Source: Heteronotia binoei
Lineage: Eukaryota
Assembly (NCBI RefSeq): GCF_032191835.1
Contig: NC_083223.1
Span: 254,448,001-254,512,000, forward strand
Direction: 5' to 3'
Length of the DNA stretch: 64,000 nucleotides
A model generated the notes under the pieces. It had not been told where the DNA came from. It saw nothing but the letters and a program-made list of their open reading frames with translations, and did no database searches. Positions 205 to 18,017 of the stretch are shown one piece after another. The position numbers and the translations under genes are program-made. Every line of letters begins with the position of its first letter. Position 1 is the stretch's first letter.

Positions 205-327
205 CTGCAGGCATTTCTGCCAAACGTCCAGAAATTTCACGAAGTGCCTCGGCCCAGCGGGAAGTGGAGTCTGCCATCATGCTGACATGGTATCCCATGT
301 CACGGAAGTACTCTGAGAGGGTGATCC
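205..327 (-). CDS. ATP6V1A: V-ATPase subunit A-like, coding exon 8 ([40 protein letters not shown]); gene continues left of the window
   Basis: Translation matches ATP6V1A; ag|GG acceptor and G|gtaa donor; 123 nt, the exon size I recall for human ATP6V1A. Confidence 0.95.
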
Positions 328-836
328 CTACAGGAGATAGGGTAGGTGACAGAAAGATACATTGCAAGAGAACATCTGAAGAGGAAGCATCATGAAGAAG
401 AGAACCAAGCCATGTAGGGAAGAAAAGAAACCCACTACCTTTGTATTACTCAGTCTCACCTAGAAGTCTTATTTACCATCATTTATCTATCAACTATATT
501 GGAGGAATGTAAGAATGGAAAATCCTTTCTGGATCAGACCACCTAGTTCAGCATCCTGTTTCAAACAGTAGCCAAATCAGAGACTTTCTCCTTCAAAACA
601 CTAATAGCAGGAGAGGAGGGATTGCTTTGAATAACCAAACCGAGTACACCAAACCGAGTAGACAAACTATCCTTACACGGTAGATGAACTACCCTGTCCT
701 TACATGTCTTCAAGATGCACTGAGGCTGCACAAACCTGGTTAGTATTTTATGGACTGAATGGGCATGCAATATCCATCTCATCTGTTTTAGCCCATTGTT
801 GCCTAGGAAGGGACAAGATAAGAGCAGCTGCTGTAC

Positions 837-945
837 CTGTGTATATGGAAGCCTCTCTGGCAGCTACAGGCATGTTGGATGTATTGGCAACGAGTGAAGT
901 ACGTTTCATGATGGTCTCTGTCTTGCCACCCACTTCCATAGTAAG
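837..945 (-). CDS. ATP6V1A: V-ATPase subunit A-like, coding exon 7 ([36 protein letters not shown])
   Basis: Homology; cttag|CTT acceptor, G|gtac donor; 109 nt; phases fit both neighbours. Confidence 0.95.
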
Positions 946-1391
946 CTAAGAGAGAGAGAAGAAAACCAAGTTTGGAGCAAAGAAGATACAGCAGGGGAAA
1001 GGCACAGACCATGAATGGGAAAGTGGGGAAGGCTATAGGGGAAAACTGGAGGGGAGTAAGAGACTGGGGAAAGACCCGTGCTTCCTTCAAAGAGTTCAGG
1101 CTGACACATGATCTCACAACAAGAGTAGGTACAGAAAGAAGTCAATTTTCTGACATTACATCTGTGCATATGGAGAACCTCCCAACCACACATAAATCTT
1201 CCTATTGTCGTGATGTCTGAATGGCAATATATGCACTTTGCATCTGAATACAGCTTTCATATGTGCAAATGACTGGATTTTTTTTCATAGTTCTGGTTCA
1301 CATGTACCAAAACTATAGAAGAACAACTTTCAAGTCCTGTAGCACTTTGAATACCAACAAAATTTTCAAGATGTAAGCTTTTGAGAGTCCT

Positions 1392-1594
1392 GACCTAGAT
1401 AGCCCATGCTAGCCCGATCTCATCAGATCTCAAAAGCTAAGCAGGATCAACCCTGGCCAGCATTTGGACGGGAGACCTCCCAGGAATATCAGGGTCATGA
1501 CATGGAGGCAAGCAATGGCAAACCCACCTCTGAATGTCAGCTCTAAGGGGGTCACCATACGTTAGCTGTGACTTGACGGCACTCTCCACCACCA
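1392..1594 (+). mobile_element. 5S rRNA-derived SINE with Sauria/BovB-type tail
   Basis: Head resembles 5S rRNA (GCCCGATCTCATCAGATCTC..AAGCTAAGCAGG..GGGAGACC); tail GCAATGGCAAACC..GCTGTGACTTGACGGCAC; related copies near 19965-20110 (+) and 33340-33510 (-). Confidence 0.75.
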
Positions 1595-14035: not shown

Positions 14036-16328
14036 GTCAATCTCCTTGTCGATCTTGGCATCTGAGGAGATGATGCACCCCAGGTAGCTGAACTGCTGGA
14101 CTGTCTTCAGAACTGATTCACCCACAGTGATGCAGGGAGGGTGATAATCTTCCTGGGGTGCAGGCTGGTGGAGAACTTCTGTCTTCTTCAGACTAACTTC
14201 TAGGCCGAATAGCTTGGCAGCCTCTGCAAAGCAGGACGTCATATGCTGCAGAGCTGATACCGAGTGGGAGACGAGTGCAGCATCGTCAGCAAACAGTAGC
14301 TCTCGGATGAGTTTTTCCATTGTCTTGGAGTGTGCCTTTAGTCGCCTCAGGTTGAACAGGCTGCCATCGGTGCGATAGCGGATGTAGACACCATCGTCCT
14401 CATCTAGATCTACTGCGGCTCTTTGAAGCATCATGCTAAAGAAGATCGTAAAGAGAGTTGGCGCGAGAACGCAGCCTTGCTTTACACCTGTGCCTATTGG
14501 GAAGGGCTCCGAGAGGTCGTTGCAGTGTCTGACTTGGCCTCGCTGGTCTTCGTGTAGCTGGATGATCATGCTGAGGAACCTTGGGGGACATCCTAAACGT
14601 TCCAAGATTTGCCACAGGCCTTTCCTGCTAACGGTATCGAAAGCTTTGGTAAGGTCGACAAAAGTCACATACAGACCCTTGTTCTGTTCCCTGCATTTCT
14701 CTTGGAGCTGCCTGAGAACAAATACCATGTCGGTGGTGCTCCTGTTAGCTCTGAAGCCGCACTGGCTCTCTGGGAGGAGTTCTTCTGCAATGGTGGGCAC
14801 CAGTCTGTTCAGGAGTATTCTGGCAAGGATTTTGCCTGCGATGGAGAGCAGGGTTATCCCCCGGTAGTTGGAGCAGTCTGACTTTTCCCCTTTGTTCTTG
14901 TATAGGGTGATGATGATTGCATCGCGAAAGTCCTGTGGTAATTTGCCTTGTTCCCAGCAGGTGACAAGTACTTTGTGAAGTGAGCTATGTAGTACTGTGC
15001 CCCCATGCTTCCAGATCTCTGGTGGAATTCCATCAACTCCTGCTGCCTTGCCACTTTTCAGTTGCTTGATGGCTTTAACAGTCTCTTCTAGGGTGGGGAT
15101 CTCATCCAACTCTGTTTTCACCGGTTGAAGTGGGGTGAGGTGGATTGCTGAATCTTGAACTACGCGGTTGGCACTGAAGAGAACCTGAAAATACTCCGAC
15201 CACCGGTTCAGTATGGATGCCTTGTCTGTGAGGAGCACTTGGCCGTCTGCACTATGCAAGGGACTCTGAGCCTGATATGATGGACCATATACTGCCTTCA
15301 GGGCTTCGTAGAACCCTCTTAAATCACCAGTGTCTGCACACAGCTGGGTTCTCTCTGCAAGCTTGGTCCACCACTCGTTCTGAATGTCTCGAAGCTTGCG
15401 CTGGAGGTTGCTACATGCAGCACGAAAGGTTGCTTTTTTCCCAGGACAGGAGGGCTGAGCAAGATGTGCTTGGTAGGCAGATCTCTTTTTTGCCAGTAAT
15501 TCTTGGATCTCTTGATTGTTCTCATCAAACCAGTCCTTGTTCTTCCTTGTGGAGAACCCGAGGACTTCTTCAGAGATCTGCAGGACGGTAGTTTTTAGGT
15601 GTTCCCAGAGTGCTTCTGGAGAAGGGTCTGTGGGGCAACTGAGGTCCTCAATTCTTGACTGGAGTTTTGCCTGGAAGGCAGCTTTAACTTCGGCTGACTG
15701 GAGGCTGCCAACCTGAAACTTCCTCCGAGGGATACCTCCTCTCCTGGGTGTGGGTTTAAAGTGAAGACGGAGATTGCAGCGTACAAGACGATGATCCGTA
15801 TGACATTCTGCGCTGGGCATTACTCGGGTGTGTAAGACATCTCGAAGGTCTCTCTGGCGCACCAGAATGTAGTCGATAAGGTGCCAATGCTTGGACCGTG
15901 GGTGCATCCAGGTTGTCTTCAGACTGTTCTTCTGCTGGAAGATAGTGTTGGTGATGGTGAGCTGGTGCTCCATGCAGAATTCTAGCAGGAGGCGCCCGTT
16001 GTCATTGCAGTTGCCAATGCCGTGTTTGCCAAGTACTCCTTTCCAGGCTTCCGAGTCTTTACCTACTCTGGCATTGAAGTCGCCAAGGATGATCACCTTG
16101 TCCTCTGTAGGGGTCTTCCGTACGAGGTTGCGTAGATCAGCATAGAACTTGTTCTTTTCTGCAGGATCTGCTTGAAGGGTTGGGGCATACACACTGAAGA
16201 GTGTTGCATGCTGCTTGTTTTGAAGTGGGAGGCGCATGGACATGATGCGATCTGAGTGACCTGTTGGAAGGTTTTCGAGTTTGGAGGCAATGGAGTTCCT
16301 GACCATGAAGCCAACGCCAGAACAGGCC
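14036..16328 (-). CDS. RTE ORF, endonuclease plus reverse transcriptase portion (stop-free, N-terminally truncated)
   Basis: Lies within the 802-aa ORF 14024-16432; element-derived part runs SGVGFMVRNS..KIDKEID. Confidence 0.85.
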
Positions 16329-17061
16329 AACAGGCTGGCAAAGGCAAACCGTGCATTTGGCCGACTGCACAAAAGAGTGTGGAGCAACAAGCATCTGAAA
16401 AAAGGCACAAAGATCAATGAAAAAAGGCACAAAGATCAATGTTTACAAAGCGGTTGTGATGACAACCCTCATCTATGGCTCCGAATCGTGGGTTTTATAC
16501 CGTCATCACCTGCGACTCCTTGAGCGCTTTCATCAGCGCTGCCTTCGCACCATCCTCAACATCCACTGGAGTGACTTTGTGACCAACACTGAAGTCCTCA
16601 AGCGGGCAGAGGTTACCAGCATCGAGGCACTGCTGTTGAAGATGCAGCTGCGCTGGGCAGGGCATATTTCTAGGATGGAAAACCACCGCCTTCCCAAGAT
16701 TGCCCTGTATGGCGAACTCTCCACCGGCCATCGTAATAGAGGGGCACCAAAGAAGAGGTACAAGGACTCCTTGAAGAAATCCCTTAGCACCTGTCACATC
16801 AACCATCACCAGTGGTCTGACCTAGCCTCAGATCGCAAAGCATGGAGGCACACCATCCACCAGGCTGTCTCTTCCTTTGAGAACACACGCATAGCTGGTC
16901 TTGAGGACAAAAGGAGATTGAGGAAGAATCGCACTGCTACAGGACCAACCCTAAATCAGACTTTTCCCTGCAGCCGCTGTGGCCGGACCTGCCTGTCCCA
17001 CATTGGTCTTGTCAGCCACCAGCGAGCCTGCAGCAAACGTGGACTATTGCACCCTTCTTAA
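16329..17061 (+). pseudogene. RTE ORF C-terminal portion, frameshifted by a 22-nt tandem duplication
   Basis: NRLAKANRAFGRLHKRVW..CSRCGRTCLSHIGLVSHQRAC; duplicated unit 16398-16419/16420-16441. Confidence 0.85.
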
Positions 17062-17179
17062 ATCTTCGTTCGCGAAGCCAAGCCGAGAGAGAGAGAGAGA
17101 GAGAGACAAATGCATGTATTGTAATTTGTGTTTGGGAAATACTGAAAGGGTGTGCTTCTTTAGCTAAGAGGGTACCTAC

Positions 17180-17261
17180 CAGGTCCAGAGACACCATGCA
17201 CAAACCCCAGCAAACTCTCGTTCTCTGCATCCCCAAGCTTCGGAATTTTGGTGAAATCCAT
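17180..17261 (-). CDS. ATP6V1A: V-ATPase subunit A-like, first coding exon (MDFTKIPKLGDAENESLLGFVHGVSGP); exon begins at 17283 with 22 nt of 5'UTR
   Basis: ATG at 17261; G|gtagg donor; tctacag acceptor at 17284 implies an upstream non-coding exon; 82 coding nt. Confidence 0.93.
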
Positions 17262-18017
17262 AGCTTCAGGAGATCCGTTGGGGCTGTAGAGCAATCACAA
17301 TGGATACAATGTCTGTAGCAAAAGGAAATATAAAACAAACCTAAAAGAAAGAAAGGCAAAAACATGAGAGGGGGAACTTTATGTAGTGTAGTAGTTAAAA
17401 TGTTGGAGTAGGAGCTGGGAGTCCCAGGTTCAAATCCCCATTCTGACAAAGAAGTTTGGAGATGACCTTGGGCCTGCCACACACTCTCAGCCTAACCTGC
17501 CTCTCAGGGTCATTGTGAGGATAAAATGGAGGAGAGGATAATAATGTAAGCTGCTTTGAAGAAGAGTTGGTTTTTAAACACAGCTTTTCTCTACCTTAAG
17601 GAGTCTCAAAGCGGCTTGCTTCCTCTACCCACAAAAGGCACCTTGTCAGGTAAGTGGGACTGAGAGAGTTGTGGGAGAACCATGACCGGCCCAATACTGC
17701 ATGTGGAGGAGGAGTGGAAAATCATACCCAGCTCTCCAGTTTAGAGGCAGCTGCTTTTAACCACACTGGCTCTCACTTGAGAGGGAAGTAGACTATAAAT
17801 AAACAAACCAATAAATATATTAAAAACATGCTGCCCATGGAGGAAAGGTGAGATTAAAATGTAGGTAGTTAGATTCCCACAGGGCAGTTGGTCACAAACT
17901 GCCTTGTCAGTTTGTAGAATTCAGCTGATGGGTCACAAGAGATAACTGGACCAAGGCCTTGGGTATTTTTCAATCATATTTTTTAAATCCCATTCATCTT
18001 CCAAGTGGCTCAGGGCA

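Follow-up and report, generated by a model that had tools for sequence, protein, structure and literature searches.

The catalytic A subunit of the V1 part of the V-type proton ATPase (V-ATPase) is, to our knowledge, encoded by a single gene (ATP6V1A) in mammals, unlike subunits B, C, E and G, which occur as the isoform sets B1/B2, C1/C2, E1/E2 and G1/G2/G3; these sets combine ubiquitous and tissue-restricted paralogs and are generally ascribed to early vertebrate genome duplications. Here we analyze a stretch of 64,000 nucleotides from the gecko Heteronotia binoei (contig NC_083223.1, positions 254,448,001 to 254,512,000 of the forward strand; hereafter the window), which carries most of a V-ATPase A-subunit gene. 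The evidence makes it very probable that this gene represents, in H. binoei, an ancient vertebrate paralog of ATP6V1A, to which NCBI gives the name 'A-like'. Chicken also has a second A form, as in the isoforms A1 and A2; unlike A-like, both come from canonical ATP6V1A, through alternative splicing (UniProt 'Isoform 2', P0240), and not from a separate gene.

Canonical vertebrate ATP6V1A (structures 6wlz, 6vq6 and 6xbw) and the A-like product have in common a length of 617 residues, four Pfam domains, their intron positions, an identical P-loop exon and approximately 86–87% identity. They differ in belonging to separate clades and chromosomal neighborhoods, and A-like carries approximately 87 substitutions relative to a squamate canonical A and evolves faster. 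A further comparison is offered by zebrafish atp6v1aa (formerly atp6v1al), which marks H+-ATPase-rich ionocytes (PMC3157436). Like A-like, it is a second vertebrate A-subunit gene, and its cell-type-enriched expression provides a precedent for sub-functionalized A isoforms, but it is not an ortholog, judging from the sampled teleost copies in our trees. The RefSeq A-like genes of other sauropsids, amphibians, coelacanth, shark and sturgeon, in contrast, are orthologs, with the same clade membership and, where readable, the same synteny; they show no difference of substance, and the window gene is the H. binoei member of this set. The gene is thus already known, its exact protein being present in RefSeq and its orthologs auto-annotated in dozens of species. 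A literature search, whose incomplete coverage leaves absence unproven, found no paper on the A-like paralog; the sole 'atp6v1al' encountered was the unrelated zebrafish teleost copy.

Exon Structure and Identity of the Product

Eight in-frame exons lie on the minus strand between 205 and 17261, with AG acceptors, GT donors and compatible phases, as the initial annotation of this DNA had proposed. Together they comprise 1111 coding bases and specify residues 1–370 of a V-ATPase catalytic A subunit. The gene continues past window position 1 with six further coding exons, so that the window holds its 5′ two thirds (8/14 exons), as follows:

17262–17313 (−), probable 5′ untranslated region, contiguous with E1; nucleotides 13–145 of an mRNA contig from a Gekko-like species (L009) run unbroken over 17313–17182
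17180–17261 (−), E1, from the ATG; Met1–Pro27 plus one base; GT donor at 17179–17178; 27/27 residues identical to the public H. binoei protein (P0335, below)
9509–9637 (−), E2, residues 28–71, N-terminal beta-barrel
7552–7766 (−), E3, residues 71–142
7140–7277 (−), E4, residues 143–188, non-homologous region of A subunits
4667–4818 (−), E5, residues 189–239
2295–2457 (−), E6, residues 239–293; Walker A GAFGCGKT at 250–257, Cys254, Cys277 and GERGNEM; PF00006
837–945 (−), E7, residues 294–330
205–327 (−), E8, residues 330–370; carries [12 protein letters not shown]

The mRNA contig of the close relative aligns to the window in eight blocks, the ends of which coincide with the exon borders. The gene had been delimited earlier as 205–17283; its exons are upheld within 205–17261, while the upper end corresponds to an AG upstream of the ATG that is probably part of the 5′ untranslated region rather than an acceptor, because the relative's mRNA passes through it, unspliced, to at least 17313.

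The exons were searched singly rather than as a joined, spliced model, and a matching public protein stood for the product. E3 and E1 match residues 70–144 and 1–27, respectively, of solved mammalian V-ATPase A chains. A HMMER search with E3 against representatives at 50% identity returned mostly fragments, including a bird protein named 'A-like' (P0046), and a word search (with P0046, then with the gecko match) listed many NCBI 'V-type proton ATPase catalytic subunit A-like' proteins from birds, turtles, crocodilians, tuatara, squamates, amphibians, coelacanth, one shark and one sturgeon. Among the members of the gecko cluster is the protein so named from H. binoei itself (P0335; XP_060116295.1), with which all eight exons agree, in order, at 366/366 residues.

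The gene for this protein is on CM063325.1 of GCA_032191835.1, and the locus fetched from there (L001) overlaps the window exactly. A tblastn search of the protein in that locus covered residues 1–617 in pieces that fit 14 coding exons; a low-identity overlap between exons 13 and 14 was resolved with the aid of the Gekko locus. Because no lesions occur in this locus, the six exons outside the window are sound, and the disabling downstream lesions that the initial annotation had considered as a possible objection are absent from all 14 coding exons (617 residues). The product scores 1169.9 bits against the V-ATPase_V1_A equivalog TIGR01042 (cut-off 779.9) over profile positions 2–591 of 591 and contains ATP-synt_ab_N (PF02874), ATP-synt_ab_Xtn (PF16886), ATP-synt_ab (PF00006) and ATP-synt_VA_C (PF22919). 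This domain order, with the A-specific insertion ATP-synt_ab_Xtn, is that of a V1 subunit A.

The intron positions of the A-like gene equal those of canonical ATP6V1A from Python, so the copy was made at the DNA level and not by retroposition, in agreement with the earlier view that it is not a processed copy. Also borne out are an intact P-loop (GAFGCGKT in E6), a catalytic exon identical to that of a mammalian representative (54/54 residues of E6) and an N-terminal exon (E1) in which 10 of 27 residues depart from mammalian ATP6V1A.

Phylogenetic Position and Age of the Duplication

Maximum-likelihood trees (LG+C20+F+G4) were inferred from 57 and 50 full-length proteins and rooted with amphioxus, hemichordates and starfish. 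There were three trees in all, two quick and one careful; the careful tree and the approximately unbiased (AU) tests were run without seven redundant rows (P0300, P0259, P0331, P0343, P0271, P0336 and P0232). These trees unite the gecko protein with other gecko and squamate A-like proteins, and the clade extends to tuatara, turtle, alligator, birds, amphibians, Latimeria, Mustelus and Acipenser. It is supported at 94 in a quick tree (Shimodaira–Hasegawa-like approximate likelihood ratio test) and at 91/93 in the careful one; shark, sturgeon and coelacanth lie inside it in 3/3 trees. Canonical ATP6V1A from mammals, birds, turtles, squamates and frogs makes up its own, well-supported clade (99/92 in the careful tree), and both the A-like and the canonical tetrapod clades also appear in both quick trees.

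Forcing all squamate A and A-like proteins together costs 132.8 log-likelihood units (AU test, p = 1.8e-5), and the corresponding penalty for tetrapods as a whole is 28.7 units (p = 0.02). A duplication confined to squamates is rejected, and one confined to tetrapods is disfavored. The gecko protein thus lies outside the canonical tetrapod clade and, as had been claimed, is not an ortholog of mammalian-type ATP6V1A. The initial annotation had further described it as a whole-genome-duplication paralog retained in squamates; its standing as a paralog holds, while its retention is not a squamate feature, as the gene is held also by sharks, sturgeon, coelacanth, amphibians, turtles, crocodilians and birds.

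Both genes are recorded in Notechis scutatus, Varanus komodoensis, Podarcis lilfordi, Gallus gallus and Anas, and amphibians are represented in both clades. Among the best 120 clusters listed per search, no mammalian or teleost sequence falls in the A-like clade. The Etruscan shrew, Suncus etruscus, does have an 'A-like' protein (P0391/P0392), encoded on the same contig as its ATP6V1A and sharing one 90% cluster with it; it arose by a recent duplication in mammals and has nothing to do with the old paralog.

Two sets of teleost copies were considered as members of the A-like clade. Zebrafish atp6v1al was dropped as an ortholog, since none of the teleost copies in the sample, one of which is annotated 'V1 subunit Aa', enters the clade in any of the three trees; both quick trees put them with canonical ATP6V1A, while the careful tree does not settle their placement. 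The tree rows covered these sampled copies and not the zebrafish sequences themselves. The second set consists of a fast-evolving A-subunit copy found in the anabantarian/synbranchiform fishes Betta, Channa and Monopterus (P0268, P0258, P0266 and P0282), whose tree position is unstable. These 'A-like' copies stand beside the A-like clade in one quick tree, a placement that we take to be a long-branch effect because the other two trees do not join them. The neighbors of the Betta copy are a WH2 protein, a DHHC/lipocalin gene and a ZFX-like gene, and not the KLHDC9 block described below.

Genomic Neighborhood

The initial annotation had placed the gene in a KLHDC9-PFDN2-NIT1-DEDD block, and the Pfam domains found in the remainder of the window are in accord with this assignment:

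30341–34241 (+), KLHDC9-like Kelch gene; Pfam Kelch; head-to-head with the A-like gene
36104–43657 (−), PFDN2; Pfam Prefoldin_2
46493–55615 (+), NIT1; Pfam CN_hydrolase
62192–62644 (−), last coding exon of DEDD; Pfam TRADD-like_N (chicken DEDD has DED and TRADD-like_N)

In Gekko japonicus and Eublepharis macularius, the order is likewise Kelch gene, A-like and then a PMP22/claudin-family gene. This last gene (172 residues) is directly downstream of A-like in three geckos (39311–42060 of the H. binoei locus L001; L008 28464–31061; L007 43388–47069), where it occupies the place that human gene order would assign to NECTIN4.

The chicken locus contains DEDD, NIT1, PFDN2 and then A-like inside 15 kb. 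No Kelch gene is called between PFDN2 and the A-like gene, which follows approximately 1 kb on (L002 7743–15499); chicken KLHDC9 may be absent from this interval or unannotated. In the shark Mustelus, a 354-residue Kelch-only gene adjoins the 5′ end of A-like in opposite orientation, and the upstream neighbor of sturgeon A-like is CFAP126, the human ortholog of which is at 1q23.3. Canonical ATP6V1A of Python bivittatus (L005 36947–44340) is followed by a CTC1-like gene (PF15489) instead of GRAMD1C or NAA50, the neighbors of human ATP6V1A.

Constraint, Divergence, and Expression

Rates of nonsynonymous (dN) and synonymous (dS) substitution were estimated from codons paired residue by residue between loci. 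H. binoei and G. japonicus differ by dN 0.009 and dS 0.187 (ratio 0.050), and the ratio between H. binoei and E. macularius is 0.039; for the part of the gene inside the window, the corresponding ratios are 0.055 and 0.036. Among geckos, dN/dS is 0.04–0.06, over dS values of up to 0.46. The A-like gene is intact and under strong purifying selection, and the claim that it shows no decay agrees both with these ratios and with the open frame of 617 residues.

The residues K256, T257, E279, D349, C254, C277 and C532 are kept in 27/27 A-like sequences, that of H. binoei included, in which the Walker A motif GxxGxGKT, the catalytic Glu in GERGNEM and the Walker B Asp are all present. The three cysteines are those that, according to bovine work, control activity by disulfide exchange. 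There are 87 differences from a squamate canonical A, and 4/192 positions differ in the core (residues 239–430); the remaining differences fall in the N-terminal barrel, the non-homologous region and the C-terminal domain (residues 1–238 and 431–617). Ten positions cleanly distinguish the A-like from the canonical clade, all by conservative exchanges.

Uninterrupted, full-length, spliced A-like mRNA contigs occur in Logan assemblies from a Gekko-like species (L009, run SRR31912493, with five amino-acid differences from G. japonicus) and from chicken (L003, run SRR27537810).

Origin of the Gene and Alternative Explanations

The observations above would be explained by a duplication at the DNA level before the radiation of jawed vertebrates, most simply in one of the two early whole-genome duplications, with A-like later lost in mammals and in teleosts. 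The human regions 1q23 and 3q13 are paralogous, and an origin by early whole-genome duplication fits this paralogy.

Several points weigh against this reading. The deep backbone of the careful tree (teleosts, cyclostomes and both clades) is a polytomy, and the support of 91/93 for the A-like clade is less than full. For matching pairs of species, A-like sequences change more quickly than their canonical counterparts (chicken–snake identity is 84% for A-like versus 93% for canonical), so the A-like split could look older than it is through long-branch effects. The tree sample comprises A-like and not canonical copies of shark, sturgeon and coelacanth. The absence of A-like from mammals and teleosts comes from ranked lists of 120 clusters per search rather than from genome searches. 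Among cluster representatives and 40 members per cluster, no canonical ATP6V1A of H. binoei or any other gecko was seen. A tblastn search with pieces of gecko KLHDC9 gave no match in the shark, chicken or H. binoei flanks, and the shark Kelch gene is accordingly a candidate KLHDC9. With respect to transcription in H. binoei, contigs of four RNA runs (6–9% of sampled words) match intronic repeats and none of E2–E5, a gap that in data of this kind proves nothing.

The alternative that fares best is a segmental duplication that took place later, in tetrapods or in bony vertebrates, with the shark, sturgeon and coelacanth sequences drawn to the A-like clade by their fast evolution. In its favor are the polytomy, the value of p = 0.02 for the tetrapod-only arrangement and the shift of the fast-evolving anabantarian copies to a place next to the A-like clade in a single quick tree. 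However, the three sequences in question join the clade in every tree and amphibians have members of both clades; moreover, the shark gene has a Kelch-only neighbor resembling KLHDC9 and the sturgeon gene adjoins CFAP126, whose human ortholog, as stated above, is at 1q23.3. We consider a later duplication unlikely.

Less probable still is that the window gene is the sole ATP6V1A of the gecko, an ordinary ortholog that has moved beside KLHDC9. In its favor, no gecko canonical protein was seen among the cluster representatives and members covered, and NCBI does call the A-like-clade protein simply 'subunit A' in Anolis, Pogona and Alligator. Nevertheless, the H. binoei protein does not belong to the canonical tetrapod clade, which is itself well supported, and monophyly of squamate A and A-like is rejected by the AU test; chicken, whose A-like gene is also beside PFDN2, NIT1 and DEDD, has the canonical gene as well, as do the three other squamates named above; and the '-like' name given by NCBI would suggest that the same annotation contains a gene named ATP6V1A. 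We regard this explanation as very improbable. That the gene is a decaying or non-functional extra copy is scarcely credible, since, despite the lack of read evidence for its transcription in H. binoei, its frame is intact, dN/dS is 0.04–0.06 over dS values of up to 0.46, all checked functional residues are kept and correctly spliced transcripts of its orthologs exist in a Gekko-like species and in chicken.

Possible Function

As an old paralog of ATP6V1A, the A-like protein would replace canonical A, or mix with it, in the A3B3 hexamer of V1 and carry out the same ATP hydrolysis. Assembly into A3B3 and ATP-driven proton pumping are predicted from approximately 86% identity to subunits with solved structures. 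Any specialization would concern regulation, partner binding and surface contacts, or the site of expression, and probably not catalysis, because divergence from canonical A is restricted to the N-terminal barrel, the non-homologous region and the C-terminal domain.

More tentatively, it is possible that most non-mammalian jawed vertebrates other than teleosts run two kinds of V1, in which A-like, with its diverged N-terminal, non-homologous and C-terminal surfaces, marks a specialized population of pumps with its own regulation or partners, for example for proton secretion across the plasma membrane of epithelial or bone cells, and that mammals and teleosts lost it independently. If this is correct, isoforms would exist for subunit A as they do for B, C, E and G. 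On the main reading given above, the single A gene reflects a loss in mammals (and in teleosts), and a second, strongly constrained A gene is the rule outside both groups, which specialists may not expect. Work on chicken, Xenopus and reptile models that targets 'ATP6V1A' with antibodies, knock-downs or expression assays may address one of two genes. A-like sits in the databases under an uninformative '-like' name; as a gene it is unremarkable, while as an isoform that has been overlooked it is of modest interest.

Other Elements in the Window

Intron 1 of the A-like gene contains a long interspersed nuclear element (LINE) at 14027–16435 (−), with an 803-residue open frame for endonuclease and reverse transcriptase (Pfam Exo_endo_phos and RVT_1). 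Its C-terminal part is adjacent at 16417–17061 (+), and one end of the element is inverted, because this part adjoins on the opposite strand. An apparently full-length L1-type element lies at 20600–25522 (+), between the A-like gene and KLHDC9, with both open reading frames, ORF1 (300 residues) and ORF2 (1248 residues), open. A second, broken copy of this element is found at 50145–53788, inside NIT1.

Intronic repeats of the A-like gene, at 4993–5454 and 8020–8870, are matched at 95–99% by hundreds of short contigs from the four RNA runs mentioned above, which are metatranscriptomic. These repeats explain all words common to the window and those runs and probably represent an abundant, transcribed family of squamate repeats resembling short interspersed nuclear elements.

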